DNA of 64,000 bases from Trichosphaerium sp. ATCC 40318. Its lineage: Eukaryota > Protista > Tubulinea. Below are positions 13,774-49,363 of the stretch, piece by piece; the first letter of the stretch is position 1, and every line of letters starts with the position of its first letter. The stretch spans positions 62,001-126,000 of the forward strand of contig JALMLS010000343.1 in NCBI GenBank assembly GCA_038496445.1, given 5' to 3'. Under the pieces are notes generated by a model. It was not told the DNA's origin. It was given only the letters and a program-made list of their open reading frames with translations, and did no database searches. The translations under genes and the position numbers were made by a program.

Positions 13774-14078
13774 ATCCTCATTGTACCAAAATAAAAGAAT
13801 CTGCTACATTAGTAGTATTATGAACAATAGCGTACTTGTTATGACGACTAGAGTTTAGATGTACCCCAAACGTAGCAGATAAGTGCAAACAATCTAAAAT
13901 CAATACTTCTAGTGTTTTCTAGCTCTTAGTGAACAAATTAGCTGATTATGCAAGAAACAACATTATCGTAAAACGCGCGTAAATGGTGGCAAGTAGCGGT
14001 TGCTTAAAACACGTGCAAGTTGGCGTGAAAATTGGTAATTTTTGTTTATTTTCTACTTTCATCATACACTTAACAAAC

Positions 14079-15536: not shown

Positions 15537-15621
15537 TGGCATCAATTTGTACTTTTTAAGTGCAATAAACATTATGTAAAAATGAATTGAGTTTGCTTGG
15601 GTTTATGATTTTTTTGTTAAT

Positions 15622-16763: not shown

Positions 16764-16854
16764 AAGCTCAGCGAGCAGTTCAAAAATACGCAATTTCAAA
16801 CTGTCCAAAGTCAAGTTCCTTAAACATTGATTGTTAACGTAACTTGATGACCTA

Positions 16855-19100: not shown

Positions 19101-19262
19101 AAAAACCATAAAATGTAAACATTGTAAAATAAATACAAAAAAAAACCACCACCTGCTGGATATCCTAGATCATCAAGGCGAGTAATATGAATTGCATGAG
19201 CGAACTCTGAGGCACAACAAAGCTACATAGTCTGGCTTTTACCTCAGAGGATAATGAGGTAC

Positions 19263-21839
19263 TCAATTAAAATGATTGTCATCAATAATCAGATTGGTCT
19301 CAACATTTTGATCGGGTGTGTTGCCAATAAAAGAGCTTCCTGAACTCCCTTCAAAAACTGAATCTGATATACTTGAAGTATTGGTGCCATACAGATGATT
19401 GTCCAAGCATCTATCAAAAACTCCACTATCGCAATGAATTTAGATTCAGAAACTGTTAATTTGTTCACATGAGCGACAAAGTATTGCGAGCCTTAAACAC
19501 GTAATCCTAGATCAGGTTTACAGAATCAGTTATTGTTAAACTTGTTGAGCCAGGGAACACAAATAGACCATATGCACAAAGCCCTATAGTCACATGAGAA
19601 ATGAAACCACAAAGAAAGTTGATTGTTTTGAAAAAAGCGAAACTTCATTTAAATGGACATTCTCCACACTGCCGTATCTTGTGAAAAAATATCCAACGAG
19701 AGATCAGGATTTGTTGTTCCTTTCAAAGTGAAGTTCGCTGTGTACCGATCGCGTAACTCTCAACAAGTTATTAGAAATCAGTAATGAGGTGTTAGACATT
19801 TTTACTTCATACAATATTTATTGATAGGTACGTTAGAACATGGATAAAAATTGGTCAAGAGGCTCTCTTCAGAAAATATTAAACATTTCACGCAACTCTT
19901 TTGCCTCCCCGGAAGTTGCTTCGCCACTTGTCTCAAGCTCTCTTATTATATCATCTATATCTACATTATCATCTTCACCTTCTCGACTATATACAACAGA
20001 TAAAGGGCTGACTTGGTCAGCATATTTACTATGATATGCTCCATTTGTGGGCATTGAATCTCTTCCATTTTCTTTAAGCGACATGCTGCTAAATCTACCG
20101 TTTAAACTCTCTATCACAGAGTCACCAGGCGCGCCATTGGGCGGCGATATCCCAGAGCTACTTGGTGGAGACCTGTACAGTAAAATGAGTAACGTTTACA
20201 GAAGCTCTGAAAAGAAAACAATCAAAGTTGCCACGCACCTTTTTAAATCCATAAACTTTTGTTTACCACCTTTCTTTAACAGATCAAGTGCATTCCTTGC
20301 AGCTGATTGCCTTGCTTTCTTCTTTGTGCTCTTCCAATCACCCATAAACTCTTTTGTTCTTACTGTTACCTTAAACTTGAATACTGGAGCATGTTCAGGT
20401 CCTGCACGACCTAGTTGTTGATATGTAAGTGGCACAAGTCGCCATTCTTGACAAAGTTCATTCAACTCCGAAACCGCAGTATGAGAAGAAGAAACTCTGT
20501 ACCCAGTTTCTCCTTGGCTAAGTGTCGGTGTATATGAGGGTGAAACAGGTATCGTAGAAGAGTTCATATGCGTTCTTGGCGATTGCGGAGGTGTTGTGTA
20601 ACCGATAGCTCTTTTGGGAGGCGAAGAAGCCTAAACGCAGTTAAAATAAAACCACACCGTTACTACAATGCGTGTTAATGCACTAACATACGTTTCCGTC
20701 CGACTTAATAGCATACTCTAAGATCTTCTTTGCAACATCCTAAAAACCATGTAAGCCTTACTGAGAGCATAGAAAAACATTAAAACAAAGAAAGTTCTCT
20801 GAGAGAAAAGTAGAAAAAAATAAATCAACAACATGTCTAAATTGTGTTTAAGTACCTGGTTAGCGGCCTTTCTCCTAGTAGAAGCGTATGATGAGAATGT
20901 TTGTCCATCGTACGTTGCAACAGCTCTATATTTCGGTGGTCCTCGAGTAACAGCTAGAAATCAATATAAGACATTGCGTTGTGTACGTTACAGTAGCATT
21001 AAAATGTCTTAAGCACAATTTTTGACCAAAGCAGTGCATCTCGTCAAAAAAAGACAAGGACGCTTTTTTTGTTGTTGATGATGATCGTATCGGATACTCA
21101 CGCGATGGTACAATCTCTATTCGTGGTATAGTTTTATCATAACGCTGGAAATACTCAGTCAGCATTGTCATTGGAGTTTTTTGACTTGGGCTGCGCGAGC
21201 CATTTGATCTTGAAGTGGATCTCGCTATTTTACCACCTTGTAGTGCCAAGGCTATTGTCTGATAAGCGCGCTTAGCTACTTGTTGCTCTGCAGCCTTTAA
21301 TTTGTAAGATGTTTGTCTAGTGTTGAGGATCTTTGAAGAGATTGATTTTTACAAAACAAGAGAAAGGAAAGAAGAAATAGGTGATGCCTGGCTAGCTTTT
21401 GATTTGTAAGTGTATCTCTGAGAGGTATTTTGGCGGTGTGTTTCTTTCAATAAATGAGAAAAAAGAGTGTCTCACAAAATTTGTGGTTTTTGTTGATCAA
21501 GCTTATACACTACGCGGTTTTTGATGTACCTTTTTCGTTTTTTCGCCTTGTTGGGAGTTGTAAACTGTATTATTACAATACACTGTTGCAAAGAACGTTT
21601 GGATGTGCGGAGGTCCTGTCGACGAGGTTTTATAGCTGGTGGTGTAATATTAGCACCAATAACACATTTATGCGAAGAACAGCGTGGCGCGCTTTTTAAA
21701 AGGCTCGACGGTTTTGTATAACGGCGTAAAAGCTCCATAAAAAGGCTACAGCATCATTTTTTTTCTGTAATTCGTACGTTGGCGGATCCCATCGCTTTTT
21801 CATGCATAATTCGTTCAGCCTGCCCTTCCACGATGTCAT
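19263..21839 (-). CDS. Triple double-stranded-RNA-binding-domain protein with a C-terminal NTF2/SnoaL-like region
   Basis: dsRBD1 WKGRLNELCMKKRWDPPTY..GPPHIQTF..KTKKAAEQQVA; dsRBD2 TPMTMLTEYFQ..TRRKAANQDVA; dsRBD3 AVSELNELCQ..GPEHAPVF..STKKKARQSAA. Confidence 0.85.
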
Positions 21840-27021: not shown

Positions 27022-28955
27022 AACAAAAAAATAAAACTGCGTAATTCCAAGCGCTTCAAAAGCCAAGAGTTATCCCATCATGGTCAGTCGATAACCCCTA
27101 CTGGCGGATCAACAACCATTACAGCGAAAATGTCGCATAAACAAGCAAATGGTCCTAACAAACGAACAAAGGGATTAAAAAAGAGTGATAAACACGGTAG
27201 AAAGACGACCAAGAAAGACAAGGGCACAAAAGGCCACAGAACTAACGTGAAGAAGACTGCAGCATTCAACAAGCATCTCAACGATACACCTGGTGACGGT
27301 AGACCTATTTCTAGCAAGAAACGAAGGAAATTGATGAAGGAGAAGCGTGAAAAACGCAAACGCGCCAGGGAAAAAGCTGCGCGCCTTGATAAGCCTAAAC
27401 GCAAGCGCAAAAGCAAAAAATCAAAGAAATCATCAAAGAAGCTAAAAGTGGTTAACGCTGAAGTTACAGTTGAGGACCCTTCAAGTCCTACGGCAGCTGA
27501 TGTTCGCCTCACTGATACAGCGCGTAAACCTCCACCTCCTGCACCTAATTCGTTTGTGGTTATACCACCTCTGAAATTCTTTAAACAACAAGAGGAAAAG
27601 CGCATGAGAGGTTTAGACAAGGTACGTTAACTGCTACAATGTCAAAACACGAACAAAACTCTTTATGGCTTACTGTTTTTATAGCCACCTCAGCTCAAAA
27701 CTGGCATGGATGCTCATAGTATGTATGTAGTAGCTAAACCAGATATTGCTCCTAGACAAGCTATAATGCGTAAAAGCTTTTTTGACATGCCCGATCCAAC
27801 GAAGACACCAATGGTAAATGAGATAAAATGTTTTTTACAAAAAATGCTTTTCTATTTTGCTAGGTTCTGTTCTGTTCTGTTCGCTAATTGGTTTTTTTAG
27901 TTTGATGACGAGCCTGAACTTAACGAGTCGTTGTCTTTGTCCAGCGGTACTTTATCTATTTCGTTTGATTCTCAAGTACTCGAAGCAGAGCTTGCAAAAC
28001 CACCTGCTCCTTTGAGTAAGAGTACAAGCGATGAAGTAGATCGTATTCAAAGTATAGCCAAGTTTAACGCAAGACTAGCAGCGTTACAACAATCAGGTAC
28101 ATTTTTTTTCAACAATGTACAAATCGAGCGAATATTTGGTTTATAGACTTGTAGGTCGCGTGACAGAACCGAGTTCTCGAAGGCAAAAGGCATTCACGGT
28201 GACTGAGGGCATGTTTACTGATTTTAAGCTTGATCTACCTTCAAGCGCGTCAGGAAGTGCTAGTTATTCTCAAATGAGTCTACCAATAAGCCCAAGCAAA
28301 GCAATTTCTCGGCGAACGTACAACAGTCGGAGTCCACGTTCTGCAATCGATACAACTCGATCGCTGGCGCCTCCAAGATCGCCTATTGTTGCGTCTCCGC
28401 CTAGAATGCAAGGCGAGCCACTTTCTCCAGCCAGTGTACGTTTTTAGTACTTTTTTTTTGACAAAATTATTTTAAACTCACTTTGTACAACAGCAACGCA
28501 AACTAAACTACACACAACGTATTTCCAGACGAGTGTTGGGGTTTTTCAAGGGTAATAATAGCACTTCAAATTCGCACTCGTTTAAAAACGGTGCACCGGG
28601 CGATAAAAAGGGTTCCAAGCTCAGAAGACGCCCTACAATACAGAGTGTAGCAAGCGACGGCGAGTTGAGCTATCGCTCATCGCACAGAAGAGACTTGATG
28701 AACCATCATGGTCGCAGTGCCTCTGCGTCATCTTTTGAGCGTAAACGATACACAGAACACATGCAAGAGAAGTCGCAGAGTTCGTCTATTTTGGATGAAA
28801 TAAGAGGTTCACCAAAAAGGGGTGGCTTACAGCACCCTGGGTTGCATAGCCCTTCCACTATGCAATTTAGTCCTGGCCGGGACGGACCTGGTGGACACAG
28901 TGCCAGGCATGTTAAGCGTAGCCTCTCTTCAGGCCATCGCGTTCCAGTAATATAG
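27022..28955 (+). CDS. Hypothetical Lys-rich then Ser/Pro-rich low-complexity protein; start unresolved
   Basis: Consecutive in-frame exons (ORFs 27130, 27706, 27931, 28115, 28533) with GT-AG introns; no recognisable domain. Confidence 0.6.
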
Positions 28956-29088
28956 TACCCTTATAGGGTGCAATTTTCTGCGTGTACTTTAATAAACTTG
29001 AAAATTTTAGCTTAAACCAAGGCTACTTAAACGAGTTCCTAAGGAACTTACATATTGAAAATACAACTCGCGAGTGACGTTCGAACTT

Positions 29089-32000
29089 ATGGCCAACGCG
29101 GCTAACTTCACGAGTACTTCTATGCGTTATACTGTAATTTACTAATTCTCTCTAAGAGAGTATGTGGAATAAGCTCAAAGGAGTGATTCTAGGTTCAGGC
29201 ACCGATGATTTCAAGAAATTGGAAAGTTTGTTTTACGAAGAGAAAAAAGAAAAATCGTTTCTAGTGGATGAAAATGGCTTTAAGGTACGCAAATACAGAA
29301 ATTCGCGTTAACATACAAACAGGCCGCGCAAGATATCTTCGATTCGTTCGACAAGGCCAACAGTGCAAAAAACAGGCGCGATTACTTCGTAAAAGTAGTC
29401 AGTGAATGGACGGCGATGTTAGTATCGCTAACAACCGAAACTGGGTGGAAGCCGCTTATAACATGCGACTTTCCGTTCATATTTTGGCTTCTATTGCGTA
29501 TTCGACGGTACACTATTTGTTGATGCTTAAAATAACGTGTTGTTTAGGTACCAACGCTACCCTGGTATATCGATCGAAACTAGCAAAACTATGGACGTAT
29601 TTGCAGTGAAAGTTGTTGAAGGTTTTGTTACTGTATGTACATTTTTACAAAAGCTCGAAACGTTTCGCTTAACCTGTTGAAGGCGTGTGCTTCGATTTCT
29701 AGCGAAGGTCAAAAAATAAGGGGCGCGTGGTTTTTGCGCTGCCTGAATAGCAACAGTTCGTTATTTGTGGCTTTACACAAAGAAGTACTATTACACTTGC
29801 AACAAGATCCAAGAGATGGTCACAGTTATACTTTCCATAAGTAAGTATCCAAACGTAAATATGACTCATTATTATCTTAGTAAGGCAACTCCTACTGCGA
29901 TTGTTGTTTATTTTATTACACAAACCCTGGCTCACAATAAAACACTCAAATTTGAAAGCAAAATTAAGGAAGAAGACCGCCCTACATTTGATAAACCGAA
30001 AGTGAGTCCATGGAGGAGGTTCTTGGGGAGGTGTACAAGCAATGAAGAAGTACTAGAAGCTTTGGTGTTATGTGTGAGGATAAACCGCAAGCCATTGACC
30101 TCATACTTGAGTGATGTTCAATCTCAATATTTAAAAAAGGTACTTATTGTATTGTTTAATCCTAGTACTTATGGAAGAAGGCAACAGTGAAGCCAGCTCA
30201 TCTTCTTATGATTGTGTCCAATTATCCTAGGGGAGTACCTCTTCATTCGAAAACAAATATTATAAGTGTTATAAGAGGTACGGAACAAAGTCACAGTTTT
30301 GAACTTACCTAGCTTAGCTGTCCAACTTCAGTCTGCTTTCGAAGTCAGCCCTTGGCTTGATGGTCTTGAGCGCTTGGCGCTACTCATATTTAAAGGCAAA
30401 AAACGTGACAAGGAGGTACTAACCTTTAGTCCGTATTCTACATTCCAGTTGTTGACGTTATTCTTTGTTTAGATGTCTGCTGAGTTATTTAATGCGTTTG
30501 TTGAAAGTTTTACAAAGCGTGCCATATCGTTGTGCACGCAATCACGCTACTCCACGAGTAAAGTAGTTCTAGACTTTGATATGGTTATTTCATTAATGAT
30601 GTCAAAGTTGGAGGCATCACAGTTCAAAGGTAGCCTTCAAACTCTAATCGAATGCATACAACCACAATGGAATAAGTTAAGTTCATCAGGACTCAACCTT
30701 AGGAGGTACACCAACTTCAAAAGAAAGTACTGAACACCTCTATAGTATTGTACCTCATCTGTCAGTGAACGAGCAATTGAATTTCTTCTCACAAAACGTG
30801 GAACACCAAGAACTGACAGATAAGACAAAAGAGTTGTTCCTTGATCTATTTATGCCAATAAAGTCAGACACATTAATAGGAGAGCGTCTTGCCCCTGTTA
30901 AGACTTTTCTTGAAAGTGGTACAATTAAAATCATTGAGTATATTTTTAACTGTTGCTAGCGAAAATCACTACCCACAACCGAACAGTTAGTATCGCTAAA
31001 CTACTCGCATTTTTTCTAAAGATCGGTGATTATTCTTCAAAGTTTTCGGCTAGAGATGAAGATGAAGTGAATAGTACATTGAAGCAATACCTATGTACTG
31101 TAAGTAAAAGTGTTGTATAACAACCACCTAACCTTGATCAGAAAATATCTCCAAATCATAGGTGGCGGCAAAGTTTTCTGACATTGCCAGACGGGCTGTT
31201 TATTGACTTTCTCAACAAACAGGAAAAAAAATACTGTGCTGGCCCGTTCCCTTTACTTTACCGTAGTGCATGTGATATAGTAGTACAAGAGATATTTAGA
31301 GCTATAAAAGCTGATAACGTTATAAGTAATGGTATGTCATTTCTTTGACTTTGGGTTCCTTTTTTAACTGTTCTAGACTCATTTGTTACGCTAAAGTGGG
31401 TGAAAAGACAACTATCCACGCGAGGAAACATGCAATTCTCGTATTTCAAACTCATTGCGTGTTGTTATGCTTTAGCAGATGCAGTTAAAAGCTCAAACGC
31501 AATCTACAATCCTCCACAAGAGCTTGATGTGCTTGTTAGTATGGCAGCCTTATGTGATAAAGATACAAATCGTCACAAGGCGTACATGTATCATATAAAT
31601 TTATTCAACAAAGGGTTAGACAACTACAAAGTACAGATCCATGAATACATGAACAAGTTGGAAGACGGAGATGTTACAATGGTACATTCATTTTGACAAA
31701 GAAAATATTGTAACATGTCCTAGGCTGAACTAACAGACGTTATTAATAACAAACAAAACTTTATAAATTTATGTAAATCACTTAAGGTTGGATATATTGG
31801 CGTAACTAAGAGTGAAGACCTAAAGAAAGACTACGAGGAGACAATTAATGAGCGGCAGAAATCTATTCTTGTAGGAAAGTATCTTGTTGAGCTCCGAATT
31901 AATCAAGCAACTGGGTTGATATACTCGTGTAGAGGACTACATTCATCGGCAACCTACAACGACATCAAAAGTTCTTTATTCGAACTTCGTAAGAGGTTAC

Positions 32001-35000
32001 AGTGTATTCCTACTCAAGTGATAGGTACATACATTCACGTGTTATAGATAGACATCTAACTGTTTTCCAGACTCGCTCTATTTTTTCCTTGATAGAAAAT
32101 CTGCGCTTTTTACTTCTTGTATTCACGACAGTACCCAATATCAAAAACTTATGAGCGGAGAACTTGGTGTACGATTGCAGAAATAGGCATTTTTTTCTAA
32201 GTTGATTGTAGTCGCTATCAAATGAAGACATAGTAAAAATTGTAAATGAAGCTGTAGAGAAAATGAGGCTGTTGCTTGAAGACGAACGTCAGACATTGAG
32301 CACACTGAATAGGTATTAAAAAAAGTAAGATTGCTCTAACCTGATTCAGTTTCTCCCAACTAATTGCAAAGCAATCACGAAAGGGACTAGAGGCGGAATT
32401 AAAGAATTTATCATTGTTCTTTCATGATAAGCTTGCAAACGTTTCAGAGCAAGCTATAGAACAAAAAATGAAAAGATTTCGTGCAGCCTTGGAACTCGTT
32501 AGGTACAAAATTCTACCTTCTGAAAGCATCAGTGCTAACTTAAAGATTTCAGTTATGGTAACCAGTTGAATGAGCTTGTAGAAGCTGTTGAGCAATATGG
32601 GTTCCCTTTCCAAGAATTGAATGCCATTGCGACACAAAGAGATGCAATTGTGCAAAAATCAGCAGCTATAACGTTCGGTCAGGTTCCTACAATTGTCGCT
32701 GATATAAAGAAGATGCTATGCAACTTAAAGGTAACTTACCTGTATTGAGAAATGTGCTCAATCCTTTACTATAGCCTTATCATATGCAATACTTTAAAGC
32801 TGTAAGACCAGCTGCAGACCTAGTAATGTTCTTGAGAAAACAAAAAGATTTCGGAAACACTATTCAAGTACGAAACTATCAAGCTTTTGTAAGAATAACT
32901 ATTGTTAGTTTCTACAAGATCAACTTCAAGGTCAAGACTTTCCTGCCAAAGTGTTGAGCGATTTACATTTAGCTCATGTATTCTTGGATCCGTTCTTGCG
33001 CCCTGGACAGTTTACTATGGAAATGTTAGCCAAACATGTTATTAAGCATTTCGCTACTGAAGATAAACTTGATAAACTTGAAGTTATCACGTGCGTTTAT
33101 AAATATTACCTAAACACCTTCTTGACTTTTTTATAGTGCATCCATGCAGAATCTGAATCAATCTATGATTTGGTTTAATACGGGTGTGTGCTTAGCCTTG
33201 TTCGTTGCTGTACTTACAAGCGTTAGTTCTCAAAGGTTTATCTTCATCGGCGTCCATTGTGCCTCGTATCAATAAACTATTGGAATCAGGATGGTAAGAG
33301 TATTTTTACAAAGGCTTTTTTTATAATTTTAGTTTAGGTTTCAAAGTCGACTTCAAAGGCATCGTAAAGGCTCAATGTTTTCTGCTTGCTACAAAGAGGC
33401 GGATAGAATTGTGACACTTCGTCATGATGACTTGGATGATCTTGTTCGCGGGGCGATTTTCTGTAGAACTGATTCCAAGATATTGCCCGAGCAAAAGGAT
33501 AGTATGCAGCTATTTGTTGACGTTTTCCATCTTGCTAAAGAAGTTCACGAGTGTCGCCTTCAACTTGAAGAAAAAGGTAACTTTTGCAATCTTATATTAG
33601 TGCTCTGACATATCAACTAGCGAACCCGAACTACCAGGGATCTGATGATCGTGTGTCCAACGAATTGACGCTAACGGTTCTAAAGGAAACGCTTACCAAA
33701 ATCAGAGTATAATCCGCGTATTATTTAGAACTAGTTGCTAACTCTTTTTTAGCATGAGCTTCAAACATGGGAGGAAAGCCAAAAGCTTAGCTTGAGCAAT
33801 GTCCCTAGAATAGTTAGGTTGAACCCTTACCAACTATTATCTTTAATGAAACGTATACACTCATTACAAACAAACGATATGAGCGAGGGTGACTTCGATT
33901 ATGCCTCTAAACATGATATATTTGCCTATGTAGCTGCTTGCTTTCCTGATGTACCACAGCAAGCCATAGAAATTGTGCCTGCTATTAAGCAAGCGTTGGA
34001 GGTACTTGTAGTCAATACCTCAATTACTGTTGATATGCTGTTCAGGTAAAAGAACCGCTTGATGCTGTTGCAAAATTATTGTTGTCAGTTCAAACAATGA
34101 CTCATATTGGTACACCAATGAGAAGCGATGGTTCACTTCAATACAGCCTCGTGAAAGCTGAGAGTTCAGCAAATATTGATATGTTGGCATTAATGTTTTC
34201 GCTCATGGTACTTACTTACAGTAAACAGAAGTATTTATGTAATTTTTAGAATGCTACAGCACTTCCTCATCATAGCGAAATACTATGGTGTAGCGATCAG
34301 ATAACTCCAAGGGCGCTACATCTCTTTTTACAAAGTACAATTGAATTTGCGAACACAGGAAGTACTTTCTTCATTGTTGGTGTTGATAAGCTATCGCCTA
34401 TTATCAAAGAGGTACATCACTCCTTTGCTCATGTAATGATTACAGACACTCATAATTGACCACAGGAACTATTACAATTCGTGTCAGATATACTTCAAGA
34501 CAAAGTGCATCCCATGACAGCACAGACATACTTGATTTACACTGAGAGAACCCCAACAGAGATTGGATTTCTTCCAACAGAGGAGATACAACCTTTTGCT
34601 ACGATCAAGCTAGGGTCAGCCATTAAATCGCTTGGCGCGTGGACGGCTGATAGGAATATTGGTATATTTGATTTTATTACTGGAAATCCAAGAGATGGTA
34701 AGAGCACCTACATTCAAGATAGGATGAAGGAGCTTCAAAAAGCTGGACACAAAACTTTTACAATAAGGCACGTGCTTATAAAAAGAGCATAAATTGTATC
34801 GCATCTCACATTATTTCTTAGCATCAACGAAGACTTTTCAGTCAGGTCATTTTTAACAACTCTAAACCAACAACCTTCGGATAAAGGTGTTTTTGGCATT
34901 CACTTTAATGTATCTTGCTATGCACCTTTTGATGTCTTGTTTCGTTTCTTCTATAATTGGCTGATATGTGGCACTTTCTTGGACGAAACTAGCGGCGATA

Positions 35001-38000
35001 TAGAAGTACCAAGGTACAGCACAAAAGGTAGGAATACAAGAGTTGTTGACATACTCTGTTTTAGTTCAAACCTCAAGTGGCATATCTATGTTGAAGTCCC
35101 AAATCATCATGACCATCCTGATGACATTGGACATGTCCTTGAACGTCTTCCTATTGTTAAACTATTAGGTAGGAACAGACACGTGAGTGATTCCGCATTT
35201 ATAAGCAAATTTCCATTTAAGCTATCAAAAAACGTCGGATTGGTAGCCAAGTTCCTTCAACTGGAAGCTTCAAATGTATGTGCTTTCCAATGTTTGTGTT
35301 ATTGACGTCTATCGCCTAGGCGCTTAATACAACAAACTTTTCTACTGTAGAGCGGCTTGAAGATCCACAGACAATACATAAGCTTTTAGCAACTCTTTGG
35401 CAATGTACGCTACTCCTGATTTGTTTGACATGTGCTGAAGCTTACTTACTGAATTCTAAGCTTGTCCTGATATCTTAAGAATTCGTGAGCATCAAAAAAT
35501 TGCTTTGGAGTTTCTGTGGGAGCGGTGTCAGTTCATGATTGAGTGCTATAATCACGATATCCAAATATGTCAGAAGAATCCTGATACGCTACCAAGACAT
35601 CATCAAGAGAGTGATCCTCAATATTATAGCAAGCTATTTAAGCTTTTTAAAGATGAAGTAAATCAACTTTGCAATAAGAACTTGAAGGACAATTGGGCAT
35701 CATTTAATCATGGTTATGCTTGTTATGGTAACGCTAACATAAGTGTTATGAAGCTTTCTCACGTGCGTAGCTACGAGCTTTATTTCTTTGCTAATGAAAG
35801 GCTAGTCTATGCCTGTTCGAAAATACCGTGATAGACATGGTATAGAATGTGATAATAGCTGTGATTTCAAGGTGAATATATTTTTGTTGTAAAACTCTAA
35901 AAAACCGTTAGCATGATGCCGAAACAGGCCTTTACGTGCTTGATGGACCAACATCACGTTTGGCACCTAATTTACTGAGATCTTCTTTGGCAGCTACCCT
36001 TGGACTTGAAGGAAGGCAATTGGTTCGTTTATCATAGCTGGTGCAAAACTCTTATTAAATCTAGACTGCATTGCTTAAAGAACAAGGATACTATCTCACC
36101 CCTGATTTTGCTTTGAAGCTTTACATCCTTAACGAGCGTTCAAAGACTCATGCTGGTGTTCTTCTTGAAGGTAATAAGGGATTCTATGGATGGACGTTGG
36201 TTTACTTATATCTCTATAGGTGGTACTGGTGTTGGAAAGTCAGAGATGCTCCGATTTTATGCCACAGTTCTCAATTCCCGTAAGAAAGTGACACCAAACT
36301 TTAAATACGAGCTTGTGAGCCTTATCAAGTCATTTATTGACGGGTATAATCCTGACCCTGAGGAAGATATTGGCGTGGTATGCCACATTCTTATTTAAAC
36401 TTGGATGCTGATTTACATCTAGGACATGGCTGAGTTGAAGAGCATTGGAAGAAGACTTACTGTTTATGCAAAATTAGATGACTTAATAAGAGAGCTTACT
36501 ACTTATGGCAATGATAACCCAGCAATTGCAACACCTCTCTCGAATTACCTCATACAATCACTTCAAGTACTTGTATCTGAATATCCATTGATTCAGTGCG
36601 TGTAGCGCTCCAGTAGATCATTGAACTTACTCCTAATTACTAGACCTTCAGCGGAACCAATCATTAAGAGACAAGTTGCAGAAACAATGGAAGAAGTCAT
36701 TGTATTCATAAAAGATGTCATCAAACTGAAGCCAATCAAGTTTTTTGAGAAGATCCTCCTCCATGAGGGTATCACTGCAGCAGCGTTTAAGAAGCAAGTC
36801 AAGAGTATCATCTCACAAGTTAAGAAATACGCGGAAATCCTATCGGATATTAAGTTTGTTGTATTCGTTGATGAGCTTAACACTGCGCTGATTGGAGGTG
36901 TCGTTAAGGAGGTCTTCATTGATCACACTATTGACGGCGAGCCTATACCTCCTAACATATTCTGGGTCGGTGCTATCAATCCGTACATGGAAGATGGTAA
37001 GCATAGTTAATTCTTCTTGTATTATTTATTTAACACCTCTTCAGGATCGTACATCGTTTACCCAATATCGCCAAGTTATGATGAGATAAAACTATTGTGG
37101 ACACAATTGACCAAGGATCAAGAACGTGACTTCCTGGCGTCTGTACTTGCCGAATGGCGTTTCGAAGGCGTACGTTTTCTATGATCTATTCCTTGGGATT
37201 AACGTTTATCACAGACAGCGGCAAACCTTAAGAAGAAGTTAGAAAAATTTGTTTTAGAAGCGCAACAATTTGTTGGACGTTGCAAATTAGATCGTATGTG
37301 TGTCTCTATTCGAGACATTATGCGCGTTACAACATTATATCAGTTTTTCTTAAACGTAAGTTTACTCACCTTCTGAGAGAATCACGTTACCTAACACGTG
37401 TTTATTAGCGTAAATTTATAAACTACCAACTGCATGATGAACACAAGAGTTGGCGTGCTATAATGATGGCTGTAGCGATTGGGTATTACTTCCGCCTTCC
37501 AAGCCATCGTACGTTTTGAGTATTGTTATCATGCGCTCAAAATTGTTAGACCAAGTAGGTGAAGAGCAAGCAGACTTTGTAAACTACAGACAATTATTTG
37601 TTCATAACGTTGTGGACAAACTTAATGCACCTATCAACTTCGAAAGAGAAGTATCAACACAACTCAAGTACTTCTTTGATTTGATGAACAAAAACGGCGG
37701 TATTCCTAAAGGTATCGCTCCAACACGCGCTCTTTTGGAGAATATATACAGCACTGTTGTTTGTTTGGAAGCCAAACTACCATTGATTATTATTGGTCCA
37801 CCTGGATGTAGTAAGACACTATCTTTCAAGCTTGCTTGTGACAACATGAAAGGAAATGGTACTGTAGTCAACATGACATTTTCTTTGTCACTGACCGTCT
37901 GTACTAGCTTCTCAAGTAGAGTTCTTCCGTAATTTACATAACATCAACAGACACAACTACCAGGTACAGAGCTTTCAGAGTACTGCCTCATTCAAGAGTC

Positions 38001-41000
38001 TTACTGTTTTTTACAGGCAAACGAAAATTCTACTGCCAAGGAGATAGAATCCAAGTTTGTTATTGCTGAGAGGAAACAACAAAAGTTTGAGCAAGCTAAC
38101 ATGGACAAAGAAAGGTGTGTTGTATTCATTGATGAAGGTGGTCTACCAGAAGAAAAAGAAAATGCGATGAAAGTCATTCATTTCCATCTCGACCATCCCA
38201 AAGTACCTTGTGTCATCCTGTCAAACAAAATGCTCGATGCAGCAAAGTCCAACCGTGCTATTCAAGTACGCCTTTGGAGACACAACGAAAATACTTACTG
38301 GGTTACTTTTAGGTCCGCCAAGATTTCATAGGCGAACAGGATATGATCACTCTTGCTAAGGGTACGCACTCAGCACATCGATGGCACTAACGTTGACAAC
38401 AAGGATGTTTGGCTCTTGATTCAAGTGCAAGTATGAAAAATGACTCTGGAAGTATTGTAGGTCTTTGCAAGGCATTCAGTCAAGTCAACGATCATGTCGA
38501 TACACGTGCTCATCTCTTCCATCAACGTGATTTTGTATATTTTCTACGTTACTTGAGAAAACATGGTACACAAGACGCACACAAAAGTTATGTTACTTTC
38601 TCTCCTGAAATCGTGATAAAGGCTCTAAAGGTAAGAGTTCAAGACGTACTACCATATCTTTAACCCTTAATAGCGTAATTTTGGCGGTGTTTCAGCAGCT
38701 GCTTTTGAAAACATTTGTAGTTTGTTTATGACTGTAATCGCTGAAGAGACGAAACAAAGAAAATGGAGTCTTCCAAACGATTTTAAATATAATGTGATTG
38801 ATACCCTTAAAGAGAGCATAAAAGATACCCTATCACCTGGAGAAGATCCAAGTCAATCCGCAAGTAGATACATTATGATCATTGACCCAACTAATGTTCA
38901 GGTACTTAACAGTCTTTTGAGTTGAAAAAAAATTGCATGTGAAGATTCATCACATCGTAGGCCTCTATTTCGTACTTGATGTCAATGGGTTTACTTCACC
39001 ATGACAAGGAAAAACGTGAAAAAGGAGAAGGTCAGTTTACCTACATGTGTAATGTTTCTGATTTCAAGGGTACATAGCTATAGTCGAATAGTTTGGAAGC
39101 TGACATTTGCCAGGTGATGAAAATGATATTGCAAGAAGCTCGTTGATTTCTGAACTTAAGATGCATATGGAGACAGGTGACACTGTTGTATTGTTCAATA
39201 GTGGACCAATTCGTACCTCCTTCTACGATGTTGTCAACAAACATTTCTCAAAAGTTTTGGGTGGCACAGATCAGTATCAATACTATGCTAATGTAGCTGT
39301 TGGGTGAGTTTTTTTTCTTTGGTCGCTTTTATTCTTATTTCTTATCAGCTCGTATTCTCGTCCTTGTAAGGTCCACCCAAAGTTTAAAATGATCATCCAT
39401 CTACCAATTGACGAGATGAAAACCACTGCTCTTCCGTTCTTGAACAGGTTTGAAAAGTATCTGTTTAGCACAGGTATGATCACTTTAAAGGTTTTTCATT
39501 AATGCTGTTGCTTAGAGGAAGTCCTGAAACACGAGATTTCGCGCTTTGAATACTCATCACAGAAGCATGTAAGCTGGCAGCTTGACAACTTGCGTGCTGG
39601 AGTTAATGACTTTGTGGAACAAGTCAAACCAACCTCGTATGAAAAAACCTTTCAAAAGTATTTTTTCGTTTACCTCGGTAGGTTTTATGGCGTAGTCGCT
39701 GCAGTAAATAAAGATAACGATAAAGATAATTGTCTCAAGATCACATCTTGCGATACCATCGATTCTCTTCTTATTACAATCGCAAAGGAGAATAGGTAAG
39801 CAAGCTCACGTTGCCTTGTAAGTCTAACAAGTTCGAAACAACAGGGCTTTCAATGGAATTAATGCAATCCAACCTGCTTTTTTTGTTGAAGACAAACAAC
39901 ATAATACGCCCGTTGATTCTAGTATTGGTCATCTCGTGAGGCAAGCTAATTTCCGTCTACTTCAACTAGCCAGGCCTGAGGCTGTATATCTCGAACGAGG
40001 ATTCTTACCTAAGGCATACTTATTTGAATATCTAATACGCCAAGAACATTTCAGGTATATTCTCTTTACACAAAGGTTTATTAATCACTTCGTTTAGTGT
40101 GTTAAGATTCTTGCACGCCTTGTTTACAGCTGAGACTTATGCTGCCTGTACGAACAACTACATTATAATGTATGCAAGGCTAATACATTATTTAGCTAAC
40201 CAAGGGCAAAAGAGAAAGTGGGTTATCTTTACAAGAACCTCTCCAGAGATGTTTTGTTTACATACAAATTCGAGATTACAACAACTCATTGTTCGTCCAT
40301 TAGTAGAAGAAAACAAGGATAAGTCTATTGATGAGCATTTGCGAGTAATCAACGTATCTTCTATTCAATCTAGCGAAGATTGCAAGCAACATATTAAAGC
40401 ATTCTATGCTTCAAAGACACGTGTGCTACTAGCAGTTGCAGATATGAGCGTTGGACAAGTCAGCAGGAACCAATTGAGCCTTCTTCAACAACAAGTGGAT
40501 ATGTTCACAGCTTCTTTAGATCCTGAAGACAAACGCATTGTCATCATACTTGTTCACTTTCCTACCGAGCAAACTCAGGTATTTTAAACACTGCTTCTTG
40601 CTGTGAACTTGAACTAACACCATGATAGCTTATTCGTTCTTACTACGATGCTGTATTCCTTAAGGAATGGGATTTTACTTACATTGATTCTTTGGGTGTT
40701 ATTTCTACTACTGACACTTCATTGAGAGAAAATAATGAAGATATCGATATTGTGGAGAACGTCGATTTACGTGATTGGATCAAAGTAGCGTTTATGAGAA
40801 CAGATGATAACCTGAAGCCTGTTACAAATGGAGATAAACGTAAAAGCTCTCAAAAGCTTGGAAAACCTTTCAGCAAGCAACTAGATAAATCAATAAGTGT
40901 TTGCTTAAAACACATCACATACTCAGTACAAAGAGTACCTAAACTTGAGCATTCACTAAAGTTCTACAGAGCTCGAAGACCTGCTGATAAGACGGTACTA

Positions 41001-44000
41001 CACTCATGAGTGTAAATGATCATGCTAAGTGCTTTTCTTTTAGGCGGTAATCCAGCAAGTGTTTACAGAAAACAATTACCTCAAGGAAGCGATTGTTGAT
41101 GTTCTTGTTAATTTATGGGATAAAAGATACTTGGATAGTATTATACATAGTGCTTGCCAAGCTCTACAAACAGGAGAGTCTATCATGCCGCTCATGGACT
41201 TGATCAATATGTCGCTAGAGTTTATAATTAATAAGATTATTGGAACCTCAATATCTGGTAACCAAAACAGTTTTACTGTTAGACCTAACTAACAGAAAAT
41301 TAGAAATTACTCGCAATTTCGCTTTGGAGACTATTATGGCTATCCGCAGTGTTGAAAACGAATATCACCGCAAAGCTTTAGAGGAAGTTACTGTACTGGG
41401 TCTTTCAAACATTGACTGGAATTTACCTGTACGTTAACCTAAAGATCACAGTCTATTAACTATTTTACTTTAGAAGAACTTCCTTTCCTTGAATATTTTA
41501 CAACTGCCTCATGTATCTCACTCTCAAAAAGCTCCAGCTTCATTACCATTGTATCATGTGTTATCATCTAAATTAACAGACGCTCTTGATAAGGCAAGAC
41601 AATGCGTTGGTTTAAGCGGAGCACAAAACATAGCAACTACAGTACTTCAACAACTTAACCTTATGTTGAAGCTCGACAAACCGCTACAAGTGCGTACACA
41701 AGCTATCCTGAAAACAATAACACTTCAAAACTTACTTATATCTTACTAGAAATGGATTAACGCTATCATACAAGATCCTTTCCTTCTAAGAATGTTTAAA
41801 GAGGTACATTAGACTTAGCGCCAATCAAAAACCTAACAAGAATTAGGACTTTGTCAAACACACTCTTGGTCTACCAGATATTTCTCAAGAAGAACTAGAT
41901 GTGAGACTGTTTCGGTTTTCAAAACAACTACTAACTGTGTGTAGGTTTACGTAAAATGGCTTGGCGTCAATAGTCAAGAAGCCACAAATCCAATAACAGC
42001 TTGGTTCACATCTTTGAATGAAGATGCAACGGCTATTGGCTTCTTTCACGTTTGCTTAAAACCTCTTCTTCAGACAACAGGCACTTTAGATCTGAGAATT
42101 GATCAGGATATTACACCTCAAAACTTTGAATCTCTTGTCCATGAACACACCATTAGGTATACATCATTTATTCACAATTATAAGATTAACCATTATCAGA
42201 ACTTACTGGAAGCGTCTTCATGAACTTTATGATGCACCTGATGATGTTCTAACTAAATGGTTTGACGGATTCAGATTATTGAAGGTACGTAGCCATTGCT
42301 TGTTAGATTGTTTCGCTCACACTTTTACAGGCTCGATTACCAAGCCACTTTGAACGTAATACAATGTTACCAAGAGCTCTAAGACATCAATATGACGTAA
42401 TGTGTACATTATTTTCTTTCGTTATGAACTGCCATGTTAAACCACGTGACACTGTAACTTGGTTTTCAAAGCTTCAAGTTGAAGAAGAAGGAACAACAGC
42501 ATCACTCTTAACACTCCATATGGTACCTTCTGACAATCAATACTCAATGGTTAACCTTTCATAGAAACTTGTTGAGTTACTGCAACCACAAGTAGAAGAC
42601 AAGGAAGTGCTTCGTCAATGTCTTGAACACTTCTTCGAAGATTGGGCCATATCAACATTCATTCCTGCGAATACTAACTCAGCAATACTTCAAAAACCTC
42701 CAAGAGAAGACTTCAAGGAAGATCTTCGTCTTCTTTTTGAAATAATTGACGGACAATCCTTTGAGATCGTGAACGCGCACTTGCGTTTACCAATACAAGC
42801 ACGTGTTTTGAAGTCGCTTCTAAGAACAAAATGGAGAGATGATGTGTTGGATATACTTGGAGCCCAAATGGCTATGAGGGCTTCAGCTGATAGATACACA
42901 CCTCCAGAGCTTGTAGCTTGTCAAGGTGCGCATGATAATCACTTACCAAAAGTGCTTCAAGCTTTTTCTCACGTCTGCTCTAGAAGACGAAGAAGAACAT
43001 ACATCTCCTCTACAGTATCTATACTATGCCACATTATGTGAAGAGCTATCTCCTAAATCTATTGGGGCCATTGCCCAATACTTTGTAGATTGCACACCAG
43101 AAACTTTTGTGAAAAAGGCGTCAAGATGTATTCAAATAGTGAATAAGGAAGCATACAGACTAAGTGCAATAAAAGGTACGATTTGCACGTTTGAAAAGTA
43201 TTCTGCTAACAACCTTTTTACAGCTGCCGCAATCCAACTATCGTGCTCAAACAACTTCATAACGCTTGTTCAAAGTTGGACTCAATCCCAAGGAGGTGCT
43301 CAACCAGTTTGTGACACCTTGAAGAAGATATTTGAACAGCAAGACTACCAGGTACACATTATCTCCTTTTTTCAGCCTGCCCTCTTTGCTAAGTTTTTAC
43401 TAGTCTATATTCTTCTCGAGCTTTACTAATGATGGACAAGTCATCAAGTTACTTAAAGCGAAGGATACCATGGCGAGCTTAGGACTTGAGAATTGGGTAA
43501 TAGATGATAATGTTTCATCGCTCCCACTCCACAAATGGCCTTTCATGATTGATACTGAGCATTCTGACCATGCGTTTTACAAGACAATTGAAACTCATGT
43601 ATCAAGTAATGACCTTAAAGCATTCGAAGCGTGGATACAAGAAGAAGTAGGCAATCAACCTGCGTCGTGTCTAAAGATAAGAATGTTCTTGCTTGTAGCT
43701 ACCTATTACAATTACTTTGAACTCGGAAACTCCTGTGGATTCACTTCATCCGCTATACAGAACCAAACTGTCTCTCAACTCCTCAGGTTAACAGCAGATG
43801 AGAAGGTTGTTTTCGATTTCTTTTCTAAAGCTCCACCTGATGCTCCAGTTCATGATGACTTGCTATTCGAGTTTTCTATAACAGCCCTTCAAGATAATGA
43901 AAGAGATAACTCAATGCGTCATATTCTTTTCTTGCTGATTGCTGTTACTATCGGACTGGCTCCTAACAAGTCACACTTTTATCCTAGAACATTCGCACCA

Positions 44001-47000
44001 GGAGCTGTAAGTTATTTGCTTAAGTTAACATCTAAACAACTTGTGTAGGTTGGCAAACATAAAGGAAGAGCTCCTGGAAGCACCAGGCCTGGATCATATT
44101 CTGCTAATGATTGTGGGTACATACTCAACAACGGAAAGCTCCTTGGTTCGTTATAGTTAGCTTATTGTGTTCACTAACCTTGCACTTAAATAGGCAATAC
44201 AATGTTCAGCGGTTCTAGACTTTCAACTCTTGCCAACAACTCTCTCACATGGGGTTCATTTGCAATGTCACTACTAGTAAACTATGCCAAGTTTGCACCA
44301 CAAGTTACACCATATTGTTATCATGGAAAATACCACGACTTGCTACGTCAAGATAACGGCATAAACTTAGCTGATTACACTCAAGAACAACAACTAAAAC
44401 TCTACGTTATGACTCGGTACGACTACTTTTCTTTTGTTCCAATATACCGCCTAATACAAGCAATAGTGCTCGTGTGTTTTATACGTATGTGTGCTCTGAT
44501 GAGAACATCAAACAAGCTGGGATCGAACCATTATTCTTCATGACTTTATCATTATGGCAATTCTTTGTTGTAGTCAGTAACGTGCGTGGAAACAAATCTG
44601 AATACTCCAATTCAACTTATTGACACTTGTGTCAGGGAGATGCAGCTGCTCTAGACTACTTTGACAACCATCAACAAACACAAGCTTATGAAACAATGAT
44701 GAAAGTAAAAGTGTTCGACTTTGTACTATCTAAAGCAGGGTACAACATAGTATAAGTCCAAATGACAATTTAATGTTGATTTAGTGCCATAAAACAAAAG
44801 TACAAGCAAGCCTATTTGCAAAGCGAACGGCTTCAGCAAATAAACGAAAAATCTGAGATACTTCAACAGTTACCAATATTGTTCCCTTCATACGACTTAT
44901 TCGATAAAGTATGGCTTTTTAACAGCTCCCTATATTCGTATTTACAATTAACAACTGTGTTAGGCATTGGCAGACTCAACTGAAGACTTTTCTATACTTC
45001 GCACTTTTAAGAGCGAACGAGATAACTTGAGACTGCTTGTTCACTTGCCGTTCTTTGTTCATGCGTACAGGTAGGACATTTGTTTGGGTTAAGGCTGTTT
45101 TTCTTAACGTCTTTTTTTAACAAGGTGGATAAATGACACGTTTGCGTACAAGTTTACTGTAGAAGATGCACAACGTATTACGGTGCCTGAAGCTATTCAA
45201 AGGCTTCAAGTCAACACATCAAAGAAGAATGCACACTTTTTGCTGTGGCAAGACATCAAACAAAAATGGAAGTCAATCAAGGATGTGTACGACATTGCTC
45301 CACTATAACATTTTACCTTATGATCTCACGTGATTAAAAACCTTTCTAGATTACAGTATTTCAGAGTGTGCAATGACGCCATGGAGAATGGTGAAGGTGA
45401 TATTCCAGATATAACAGATGAAACTCTCTTTTCAAGTGAGTACTCAAAGTCCCATTTATTGAGAGTTCTGCTTGCTTATCCTTTCTACAGGTCTTGTATC
45501 AATTGGATCTGAAAGGACCAACACAGAGCTTTTATATATCATCGAAGAGCTTGGAAAGTTGCAGGCGAACGTAATTGGATCTGCTGCAGCTTTGACCGAA
45601 GAAGAAAATTCAGGCGACATTAACACACTAGGTGCTACGTTTAATCCATTCGGTCTGGCTTGTGATTCTCATTTCGAGGTACAATATTTTAACACAACAA
45701 TACTCATTCTATTAGGACTACTGTCTCGCATATTTACCATCACTTGTAAAGTCAGAGGTGCGCTGGCTCCTCTGCACAGGAGATATTGAAGGCGAATTTG
45801 AAGGTACCATATGACTCTACGGTATTGTGCATGCTTGCTAAGCAGTATTAGATCTTGTACGCAGTCATATCAATATTATTAGAGATGAGGAAGGATCACT
45901 ATCACTTAAAGTAGACCTTGGAAAGTACGTGTTTCTCAGCATGGATTATGTTCTTATAAACTTGTTTCAGGCTTCAACGTCAAGTTCTCGACAAGTACTT
46001 TTCCGGACGAGTATTCAAGTGGCTTGATGGAAGTCCTATATCTTTCAAGCGTGATTTCAAAACAGCTTCTCCAGGAATGGAAGCTACAACTTTACTAAAA
46101 GAAGATGACCTTCCACAAGAGTATAGTGAAAACATCATCTGACTTTTTCTTATTATTTTCTTAGTGATCGCTTCGCTCCAAAGAGACAGTTCCACCATCT
46201 CTTAAACCAACTCAATAAGCGTTATTGTGAAGAAGACACTTCCAATCAAGTAGTAGCTATATTGGCCGGTAAAAGTACAGAGCATAGGCTTATGACGCTA
46301 CTTCGTGAATTGACAAACGTTGCAAATTACTTGGTCGAAAAAGAAGATGAGCTATCAAAAGATGCTACTACACAAGACCAACCTATAAATTATCTCAAAC
46401 TAGACTATGTTTCCTCTGGAGAAAGATGGCTAGATCGTATATGGCGCCAAGTACATCTCAATCACTTACAAGTGTTCGGAAAAACAGTTCTTGAAAAACT
46501 GCTTTCAAAGGACTACCTCTTCAATAACTTGCATGAAAACTTGAGCCATCCTATTCCACAGCGTACTCTAGAAGTATTAGAAATAGAGTTTGCTCCTTTA
46601 AGAGACGACACAGCACCTGCAGTCGAGCAACAAGTAGCCCTTGAGAACATGCAAAAGATTGCTAATTTCTTCCTTCTTAAAGAAGAAGTTCAGGTATGAC
46701 TCTCGCTTTTTTTTGATGACAAACTTACTCTTTCCTTAAGCACCTTGCATCCAATTCATCATCTAAGACGCTGAGGAAGTTATTCGCTACTCAACTTGAA
46801 GGACTAGGCATTGATCAAGAACAACTTGACAAGTTCTTGCCACAAGAAATTCTTGCTAAACACTTCAGAAGTTATGTTTGTCTTGTACAGCAAACATGCG
46901 GGTTGATGTTATTTCACCTTCAATCATCAAAGAAAGCGTACGTTATTGACAATAACCACCCTATGCGCAGCTTTAAGTGGGGTTCTTCTAAGAGTGTTCT

Positions 47001-49363
47001 AGGAAGACTAATGTTTATGTTGAACTTGTACCAAACAGCTCAGATAATACCCCTCTTCCAGATGCCGAACCTCTTACCTTTGAACCCGTACAAGAAGAAC
47101 CTCAACCTCAATTTGTTATCCCATCTCTAAATGCAGCAGGTACTGTTTAAAAAAAGAAGAGTTAAAGCTGTTTCCGAAATATCTAACAAACTGCTAGCTC
47201 TTCCCGACCTTGCAAGCTTTAATATCAATATAAACGATTTCAACTTTCCAGAAAACATGCAATACCACGCATTCGACAACTTTGACGTAGATGAGCTTTT
47301 GAATGAAGGTATACAGTACTTACACTGCACACCAAACTAATAGTTTGGTGATAGGAGAAGCTGATGTTTCAGATGATGATGAAGACTTTGAGGACAACCA
47401 AGAAGATGACGATGAAGTTGAGGAAGACGACGATGATATCGCACAGGAAATGGAAGATATAGAGAAGGAAGATAAGCACTTGGAAGAAGATGAAGATGAA
47501 ATACAGGAAGACGATGATGATATCGCCAAAGAAATGGAAGCAATTGAAAACGAAGACAGACACCTTGTTGAAGACCCAACTGTTCAAGTGGATACAAGTG
47601 GTCGTACACCTGTACCAAAAGGTTCTTTCATTGCAGAAGATAGTATCAAGGGTATGTAGAGGTATTACAACGGTTTTTAACTAACTATAAAAGCAGAACC
47701 TTCGAAGAAACACGATACTGTAGATATAGATTTGACATTAGAAGTTGAAGATATTGTCTTTAGGAAAGACGTCAAGGACACTGACTCTGATGATGAAGTT
47801 GAAGATGGCATGATTATTATTAGCACAACGTATAAGGAAGAGGATTACAATATTGACCTTGCTACTGATGATACACTTGGCGATTTTTTGGAATGTCTAC
47901 AGGATGAGGTATGTTTTAAGAAACCACGTGTTTTTACCATTTTTTTAACTGCTTATGAATTAGATTGGAGATGATTTTCCTGTTTTGTATGAACTCTTTA
48001 ATAATGGGTCACTTATTTTTAGCAACAATGACATGCTAATCGAGCACCTATTCCCAAAACAGAAGAAAGTCAAGCTTGTTCTAAAGGGTAATAAAAAAAA
48101 CTACCATCAAAACGTGATGATACTTACTGACAAAAATCTTTCCAGAGAAAGATGAGTTTTATGATATAACAGTATCAATAAATGGAAAAGAACTTCAAAT
48201 AACCGTTGAAGATGGAGCAGAAGTAGAAGAGATTTTAGAGCTAATAAAAGACGAAGCAAAGGTAATCATCAAACAACATATTCTCCTCTCACTTTACATC
48301 TTTTGAAACAACCTCCTAACTGATTTCATTCCAGGATGTCCTTGGCATAGATGTAATGGAAGATTCTATTTTCAATGTAGTAGGACCAGACAACAAAGTA
48401 GAAGCTTTAAATGTACGACATCACCAAGCTCTACATGAACTTCTGTTTTTTAACATTCTGTTTTAGTCTCACCTGAAAGAGAGTATCGGCTCAGTACTTA
48501 TGGGAAGTAGATTGCTGACTATCAAGTCACCTAGTATTGGTTTGACAGTTAAATGCATAATCGATGGAAAGCCTGAAAAGATTCTTGTAGTCGAAGAGAA
48601 CCCATGCATCTATGATCTAAGAAACTCAATTGTGCGTACAAAAAATTCTTGAAGCAAGTTTTTTGCTTTCTTTTCCTTCGGTTTGGCATGTTCCAGCTGT
48701 CTTATGTTTGTCTTCTTTTATAGAGTAAGAAACTTGGTGTTAGTATCAACATAATATCACTTAAAACAGCTATTCAAAACTATGGAGAATTAACCCTTGC
48801 GTTATCTCTTGATAGTGCTCCGATTTCATTACCAGTTTTCAAAGGATTTACTTGTATAAGACTGAAAGATTCTACCAACACCATTGATCCAGAAAGACCA
48901 GCATTAAGGAACTTCGAAGATTGTACACGTACGTATTGGAATAGTAAAGTAGTGAAGAACAAAAAATCAACATTATGGGATCTGGCTGACTTGTTTTTTT
49001 TCTGCAGCTGTTAAATGTGTTATTGAAGACGAAAATGAGTTTTTGGTTCTTGTAAAACAGAACTCATTCTTGGAGTCAATCACTGAAGAGTTACTGCTGG
49101 TAAGTCAATCTATATTTTAGTATAGCATTTGGTAGGTTGTAATTAACAATGTATTAGAACACTGATGCTAAAGACGCAGCTGAACTTCATAAAAAGTATA
49201 AGTTTTACAAAGGCAAAGGTGAGTTTTTTTTTTAAGTACTTGAGTATTAATGATGTTCAAAAAAGGTTCTGGAACGCGTATATCTAGTCCAAAATTAATG
49301 AAGAAAATCCAATTATCAAAACTAAATGCACCTATTCTACGTTTGATGCGAAAAACAAGGTAG
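29089..49363 (+). CDS. Giant RNF213/mysterin-like dynein-type AAA+ ATPase with C-terminal acidic repeat and tandem ubiquitin-like domains
   Basis: Motifs colinear with RNF213: GNPRDGKST; YYLTPDFALK..LLEGGTGVGKS; VVFVDELNT..KEVFIDH..VGAINPY; ALLENIY..KLPLIIIGPPGCSKT; VVFIDEGGL; SNKMLDAAKSNRA; QRDFVYF; METGDTVVLFN..SFYDVVN..CKVHPKFKMI..PFLNRFEKY. Confidence 0.9.
47402..47570 (+). repeat. Two-copy 84-nt (28 aa) acidic coding tandem repeat
   Basis: EDDDEVEEDDDDIAQEMEDIEKEDKHLE / EDEDEIQEDDDDIAKEMEAIENEDRHLV. Confidence 0.85.

Follow-up and report, generated by a model that had tools for sequence, protein, structure and literature searches.

A zinc-free RNF213-like gene in the amoeba Trichosphaerium with a conserved cysteine at about the RZ site

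A 64,000-nucleotide stretch of the genome of Trichosphaerium sp. ATCC 40318 (contig JALMLS010000343.1, positions 62,001–126,000; hereafter the window) carries on its plus strand a very large gene that is interrupted by many short introns (about 45 nt each) and is a true member of the RNF213 (mysterin) family, comprising a dynein-like AAA+ core followed by an RNF213-type ubiquitin ligase (E3) module. The encoded protein has neither a RING nor the zinc ligands of the RZ finger, and at approximately the position of that finger (43900–44290) it keeps a loop with a single cysteine, Cys4498 in N-D-C-G-Y, whose D-C-G is invariant among the aligned homologs. The chances are about even that this is a zinc-free RNF213-like protein of an old protist subfamily in which Cys4498, as the counterpart of the human nucleophile C4516, still acts in ubiquitin transfer.

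The most recently defined class of cysteine-dependent ubiquitin ligases, the RZ type, is represented by RNF213 and ZNFX1. In human RNF213 the finger binds zinc through C4505, H4509, C4525 and C4528, H4537 serves as the general base and the nucleophile C4516 (C4462 in the mouse) is not itself a zinc ligand (10.1101/2021.05.10.443411; PMC11549300), while the RING is dispensable for activity (PMC7311170). A natural zinc-free version with the nucleophile motif would provide a ready-made test of the purpose of the zinc knuckle as well as a simpler module for studying the chemistry. To our knowledge, mechanistic work so far has all been done on mammalian RZ proteins, where zinc binding is essential, and a literature search brought up no description of RNF213 homologs in protists or of an RZ form without zinc.

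That the gene is an RNF213 homolog had been proposed in a first-pass annotation, made by a model from the letters of the window, and is confirmed by one match in the ATPase core and another beyond it. The exon at 37552–37896 encodes an RNF213-type AAA4 Walker A region within a dynein-like AAA+ core: compared with the PDB sequences by phmmer, it matched mouse and human RNF213 at about 3e-11, midasin at 2e-5 and dynein at values of at least 0.01. Beyond the core the evidence is structural. An AlphaFold model of residues 2987–3737 of the closest long homolog, P0042 (751 residues; built with 16 related rows, the window's exons among them), has a mean predicted local distance difference test score (pLDDT) of 81.5 and a predicted template modelling score (pTM) of 0.75. 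When this model was compared with the PDB by Foldseek, the best nine matches were all RNF213 (1.8e-6 to 1e-3) and the tenth stood at 0.24; thus the gene is an RNF213 homolog beyond the AAA core also, with the fold of the RNF213-type E3 module, which has no other PDB counterpart, recognized through the model of P0042. The structural alignment with human RNF213 pairs 749 residues with 743 and ends at human residue 4963. The amoeba protein, in turn, matches a profile of the E3-like region made from 14 homologs, itself left out, at 7.7e-132.

The absence of the RING and of the RZ zinc ligands, as reported at first, holds throughout the locus. The 5,761-residue model contains no CxxC at all, and none of the four human zinc ligands has an equivalent in it (0/4). 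No RING or RZ zinc-ligand pattern occurs in the six frames of 26.5–49.7 kb, in agreement with the earlier failure to see a C3HC4 RING in 41500–46900. Pfam found neither a ZnF_RZ-type domain nor a RING on the exons of the E3-like region, and the RZ-finger family PF20173 had no match above its cut-off in these exons or in 18 segments of the family. The longest intron beyond 38 kb measures 92 nt, so that no intron in this part can hide a RING or RZ exon. A missed exon encoding either domain, for which the first-pass annotation had allowed, was not found, and the idea was dropped, as the introns that flank the loop exon are both crossed by a single transcript contig (run X1) and the six frames are free of the pattern.

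The genome does hold an RZ finger elsewhere. A whole-genome scan with PF20173 returned a single one (81.7 bits) on contig C256, which reads YVCPNGHPYFIADCGGAMEESKCPDCGAKVGGTSHR, ends a ZNFX1-like helicase gene and aligns to mouse RNF213 4447–4484. This gene (G000:C256:~14000-21500, locus L008, with the finger at L008:8291-8428) has superfamily 1 (SF1) helicase motifs and NFX1-type Cys-rich fingers; as predicted from sequence, the amoeba keeps a classical RZ-type E3 beside its zinc-free RNF213-like genes. The genome has another RNF213-like gene, at G000:C108:~107000-121000 (loci L006, L009 and L007), which is a paralog co-linear with that of the window. It shows no RING or RZ finger at the site, where it reads ...RLADCYLIGNQVIEPLSEGCLSYG..., and the family profile aligns the Cys of its EGC to the D-C-G column.

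The site itself does not look like a scar. The flanks of the finger had been described as joined by only about 10 residues, as if the finger had been deleted; since the structural alignment with human RNF213 is nearly one to one (749 against 743 residues), there is no net deletion of RZ size. In the P0042 model the flanking helices end at residue 284 and restart at 320, leaving about 35 residues between them (about 42 in the amoeba protein), and the modelled spacing is that of an RZ finger, not of a 10-residue stump. This zinc-free stretch of 35–42 residues has the form P-G-S-x(6-9)-D-C-G-[YF] followed by a short hairpin; in the model the D-C-G lies in the loop ahead of the hairpin, whose strands take up residues 303–306 and 309–312, and confidence in the loop is lower (pLDDT about 52). 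By this model the loop stands at approximately the RZ site, and the single cysteine that the first reading had noticed there is Cys4498.

The spliced form is carried by transcript contigs from public runs (mapped to 41500–47400). One contig of run X1 covers 43632–44006, skips 42 nt, continues over 44049–44145 and skips a further 48 nt; the aligner set the second cut 3 nt leftward, which leaves the encoded protein unchanged and fits a synonymous CTT/CTA difference. The peptide joined across the site is ...YPRTFAPGAVGKHKGRAPGSTRPGSYSANDCGYILNNGKLLGNTMFSGSRLSTLANNSLTWGSFAMSLL..., or in longer form ...NKSHFYPRTFAPGAVGKHKGRAPGSTRPGSYSANDCGYILNNGKLLGNTMFSGSRLSTLANNSLTWGSFAMSLLV..., and so the reading frame, the two small introns and the peptide of the first-pass annotation are borne out. 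Because 17 of the 20 differences between the related-strain transcripts and the gene are synonymous (three are non-synonymous), the gene is, to judge from these counts, under purifying selection; both differences that fall in the 97-nt exon of the loop are synonymous.

Conservation of DCGY across protist homologs, the check that had been suggested at the outset, argues for a retained role of the motif. A full HMMER scan with the AAA4 exon gave 150 representatives, 14 of which are long and align over model residues ~4216–5235. The D, C and G are invariant in all 14, forming three of just four invariant columns in a region of 750 residues, and the last position is Y or F. The choanoflagellate protein P0094 of Mylnosiga joins these homologs by profile search and keeps the D-C-G. 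The motif common to all reads LG.P...NH.Y..F....L.....PGS-x(6-9)-D-C-G-[YF]...IM.....R.RLALN...W; a helix is predicted at residues 320–340 of the P0042 model, the place that matches the exon downstream of the loop (44194..44416).

The members that can be named are from Pelomyxa schiedti (KAH3761459.1, P0013), Mastigella, Endostelium and Mylnosiga, all of them transcriptome proteins except that of Pelomyxa. They carry the same PGS...DCG[YF] loop without RING or RZ, show, within the E3-like region, about 20–30% identity to one another and to the exons of the amoeba, and have no annotation beyond the 'AAA+ ATPase' given to the Pelomyxa protein. The subfamily spans Amoebozoa, a choanoflagellate and other protists, and, on these alignments, the zinc-free state is not peculiar to the amoeba and defines a whole subfamily separate from the RZ-bearing relatives. 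P0010 and P0018, two proteins that the AAA-core tree described below places as sister to Pelomyxa P0013, match both ends of the profile and do not have its middle (about 115–472), which includes the D-C-G loop.

Several observations point to Cys4498 as the counterpart of the RNF213 nucleophile, an equivalence at the level of the residue that we consider likely by a modest measure, though unproven. The cysteine is residue 301 of the P0042 model and, as the structural alignment is almost one to one, interpolates to human 4513–4519, around C4516; the structure-guided alignment that had been called for places the Cys within this interval, while the attempt to pin it to a single residue failed. From the AAA4 Walker A Lys to the Cys there are 1,720 residues in the amoeba protein and 1,726 in mouse RNF213, against 1,607–1,812 in RZ-bearing protist and fungal relatives and 1,648–1,940 in other members of the DCG subfamily. 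The RZ nucleophile stands in a motif of the same form, [D/E/P]-C-G (GECG in the mouse; IGDCG in P0130 of Neocallimastix, P0143 and P0084). When an RZ-only profile was compared with the 776-column family profile, the best local match fell on D-C-G-Y. A hidden Markov model of the RZ finger also had its best match on the D-C-G in 12 of the 14 family segments; these scores were negative and are not counted as evidence.

A number of results weigh against this reading. There is no His at the general-base position, Cys+21, and the stretch that follows Cys4498 (GYILNNGKLLGNTMFSGSRLST) contains none; in other subfamily members a His or Tyr near this position is only partly conserved. In mouse RNF213, mutation of the zinc ligands abolishes activity (10.1101/2021.05.10.443411). 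The RZ-profile match to D-C-G-Y extends over 4–15 columns (E 0.09–0.3), and one run matched instead the other C-G-Y motif of the variant finger. Full-length profile-profile alignment (hhalign) of the DCG subfamily with the RZ-bearing relatives over the C-terminal region was significant overall (94%, 1e-7, 607 columns) but confident only downstream of the site; at the site it paired the upstream NH.Y with the first zinc knuckle, at low confidence. A 211-residue sub-model around the loop retrieved no RNF213 from the PDB. The structural match comes from the homolog P0042 and not from the amoeba protein itself, and the E3-like region gave no direct sequence match to vertebrate RNF213 when single exons and family profiles were run against PDB sequences. 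Profile A1 of the family covers the E3-like region and A3 the hinge with the E3-back region; since neither returned any RNF213, homology outside the AAA core is not demonstrable by sequence. The exon at 43404..44006 alone matched nothing in the PDB or Pfam, and that at 46166–46693, considered in connection with a C-terminal domain docking the ubiquitin-conjugating enzyme (E2), matched nothing in the PDB. The ESM Atlas, searched by features and by shape, returned nothing; word-index homolog searches, for which the index is too coarse, returned nothing for exon 43404–44006 and only P0094 itself for the C-terminal region of P0094. The invariant D-C-G could also be purely structural.

This last point leads to an account in which the E3-like module is no longer a ligase and the protein is an AAA+ machine or scaffold, with the D-C-G serving a tight turn or a helix cap. 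It would account for the lack of a RING, of a general-base His and of every one of the four zinc ligands, agrees with the loss of activity of mouse RNF213 when zinc binding is lost (10.1101/2021.05.10.443411) and with relatives P0010 and P0018, which do without the whole middle of the region, loop included, and draws also on the low confidence with which the loop is modelled (pLDDT about 52). Yet such a loop, probably exposed, is an unlikely home for an invariant Cys of purely structural use, the gene is under purifying selection by the counts given above, and in an alignment of 750 residues that takes in Amoebozoa, a choanoflagellate and other protists, only four columns are invariant, three of them the D-C-G; we regard this account as unlikely. 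The ligase-dead mysterin offered as one option by the first-pass annotation is likewise not supported, as conservation of the D-C-G in 14 homologs and in the choanoflagellate, together with the Cys of the second paralog, argues for a working residue. A rather unlikely alternative, to which we nevertheless give some room, accepts a catalytic Cys on a loop that is not derived from the RZ finger, through independent origin at the same E3 surface or through another cysteine chemistry such as hydrolysis of ubiquitin-like conjugates. In its favour, the full-length profile-profile alignment fails to pair the D-C-G with the RZ nucleophile, the DCG-loop and RZ-bearing proteins are split by a branch of 100/99 support in the AAA-core tree, and a His about 30 residues upstream of the Cys is conserved in most members. 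D-C-G surrounds the nucleophile of Ulp1/SENP proteases as well. On the other side, the RZ nucleophile is matched in motif ([D/E]-C-G), in distance from AAA4 and in structural position; the fold predicted for the region consists of helices and a single small hairpin, and none of the members has a match to a peptidase family in Pfam. The specific reading of the D-C-G as an Ulp1/SENP (C48) protease, a group with an alpha/beta fold and His-Asp-Gln-Cys (Pfam Peptidase_C48), was dropped, as the 18 segments have no Pfam match and the predicted structure is of this helical kind.

It is, finally, very improbable that the absence of the finger is an artefact, in which a gap in the assembly, an error in the gene model or an overlooked exon hides a RING or RZ finger. 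The N-terminal exons are a prediction without RNA check, and transcript contigs cover 42.1–43.4 kb only piecewise; however, the introns on either side of the loop exon are crossed by one contig, six-frame translation of the locus shows no RING or RZ pattern and its introns beyond 38 kb do not exceed 92 nt, the one RZ finger of the genome lies on another contig, and the same zinc-free arrangement recurs in 15 independent homologs.

If Cys4498 does act in ubiquitin transfer, the ATPase core would gate the RNF213-type E3 module, and Cys4498, presented on a flexible zinc-free hairpin, would attack the E2 thioester of ubiquitin or of a ubiquitin-like protein and then hand this cargo to a substrate. 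A different chemistry using the Cys of NDCGY, the other option first put forward, is not required, because C4516 of RNF213 is not itself a zinc ligand; the simplest reading would be the same transthiolation chemistry on a zinc-free scaffold. The wider proposal, that an ancient protist subfamily (Amoebozoa, a choanoflagellate and others) performs RZ-type ubiquitin transthiolation without RING or zinc, by means of a D-C-G nucleophile on a hairpin, is put forward tentatively and with less than even expectation. Were it true, the zinc knuckle would serve as an accessory brace outside the catalytic principle, and the age and variety of RZ-type E3s would be greater than one would gather from the two human examples.

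Compared with known systems, the amoeba protein shares with vertebrate RNF213 (PDB 6TAX, 7OIK, 8S24, 9JWG) its giant size, the AAA4 motif, nearly the same distance from it to the Cys (given above) and, at approximately the RZ position, a [D/E]-C-G motif that holds this Cys; it differs in having no RING, zinc ligands or general-base His, and in sequence similarity that is undetectable outside the AAA core. With the RZ finger of ZNFX1 (PF20173) it shares the nucleophile motif, the amoeba ZNFX1-like protein reading ...FIADCGG... and the window gene ...SANDCGY...; ZNFX1, however, is an SF1 helicase whose finger binds zinc via C-x3-H...C-x2-C, and PF20173 has no match in the RNF213-like gene, against 81.7 bits in the ZNFX1-like one of the amoeba.

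Closer comparison is offered by RING-less giant AAA+ proteins that bear variants of the RZ finger. A later word-based search added about 120 giant proteins, most of them encoded by the sole gene of a contig of some 15 kb, and RZ-like knuckles occur at the same place in about 87 of them as well as in Neocallimastix proteins, P0143 and P0084. Their pattern is C-x-C-G-[YE]...[DP]-C-G...C-x-x-C or C-x-x-C-G-N...; PF20173 scores them just below its cut-off (25 bits against 27), and the finger of P0143 aligns to the mouse RZ finger at 1.2e-4. Like the amoeba protein, the members of this group (Neocallimastix KAL6625950.1 and KAG4105136.1, P0143, P0084 and the ~87 metagenome proteins) have the nucleophile motif, as IGDCG or xPCGF, at the same distance from AAA4, and, by the hhalign result given above, they and the DCG subfamily share a homologous C-terminal region. 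Unlike the amoeba protein, they retain a zinc knuckle in which C-x-C or C-x-x-C replaces C-x3-H, together with the C-x-x-C pair.

In these variants the His ligand is gone, C-S-C-G-[YE] or C-K-E-C-G-N replacing C-P-N-G-H (P0130, P0154 and P0155 of Neocallimastix, P0143, P0084 and about 87 of P0168–P0286), and many of their genes stand alone on metagenome contigs of about 15 kb. Variants of the C-x-C-G-Y kind would escape pattern searches modelled on the human finger. In P0268 and P0252 the knuckle cysteines are kept and the nucleophile motif is lost (...NKKDF... and ...AAPGF... against ...DPCGF...), a degeneration opposite to that of the amoeba protein. None of the protist and fungal relatives retrieved has a RING, a hint that the original design did without one.

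The relation between the two forms was examined by maximum likelihood in a tree of 40 AAA-core rows (the length filter had removed P0130 and P0011). One branch, with 100/99 support, divides all RZ-bearing rows from all DCG-loop rows; the choanoflagellate lies on the DCG-loop side, as does the window gene with its paralog. The rows on that side that have neither feature are mostly proteins that apparently stop short of the site, or else the deletion forms P0010 and P0018; P0086 and P0149 are long, yet have neither motif in the expected interval. The zinc-free form is thus placed by the tree as a separate, apparently old subfamily and not as a recent loss in the amoeba. The tree, which is unrooted and contains no metazoan RNF213, sets the two states apart but gives them no order in age.

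The coordinates of the gene and of the elements around the site are collected in Table 1. The N-terminal start of the model and its residue numbers are approximate, and three places in it were corrected from transcript joints.

Table 1. The RNF213-like gene and elements around the zinc-free loop (positions in the window)
Feature	Position	Strand	Remarks
Whole RNF213-like gene	27097..49232	+	92 exons, ~5,761 aa; splice-aware model corrected with transcript joints
Exon with AAA4 Walker A motif GPPGCSKT	37550..37896	+	Lys at ~model residue 2778; phmmer against PDB sequences
E3-module-like region	43239..46016	+	Model residues ~4238-4947; many exons
Exon for helices N-terminal of the site	43404..44006	+	Holds family motif LG.P...(N/S)H.Y; alignments
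His4466 codon of LG.P...(N/S)H.Y	43974-43976	+	His in most homologs
Intron, 42 nt, GT..AG	44007..44048	+	Skipped by run X1 transcript contig
97-nt exon encoding VGKHKGRAPGSTRPGSYSANDCGYILNNGKLL	44049..44145	+	PGS...DCG[YF] loop and start of predicted hairpin
TGT codon of invariant Cys (model Cys4498) in N-D-C-G-Y	44112..44114	+	14/14 aligned homologs
Intron, 48 nt, phase 1	44146..44193	+	Skipped by the same run X1 contig
Exon for C-terminal-side helix (RLSTLANNSLTWGSFAMSLLV...)	44194..44416	+	Family motif R.RLALN...W

Two details of the splicing deserve mention. For the intron ending at 44635 (window 44467–44635) the donor is ambiguous: in-frame GT occurs at 44567, 44570, 44573 and 44582, the four candidates give proteins that differ by 1–5 residues, and the listed transcript pieces fit none of them uniquely. 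Joints with non-canonical ends or a few unplaced letters were seen at 41690–41752 (GT..AA, with AAG between) and at 45287–45351 (AC between); ordinary GT..AG introns of a slightly different strain, aligned ambiguously, are the probable cause.

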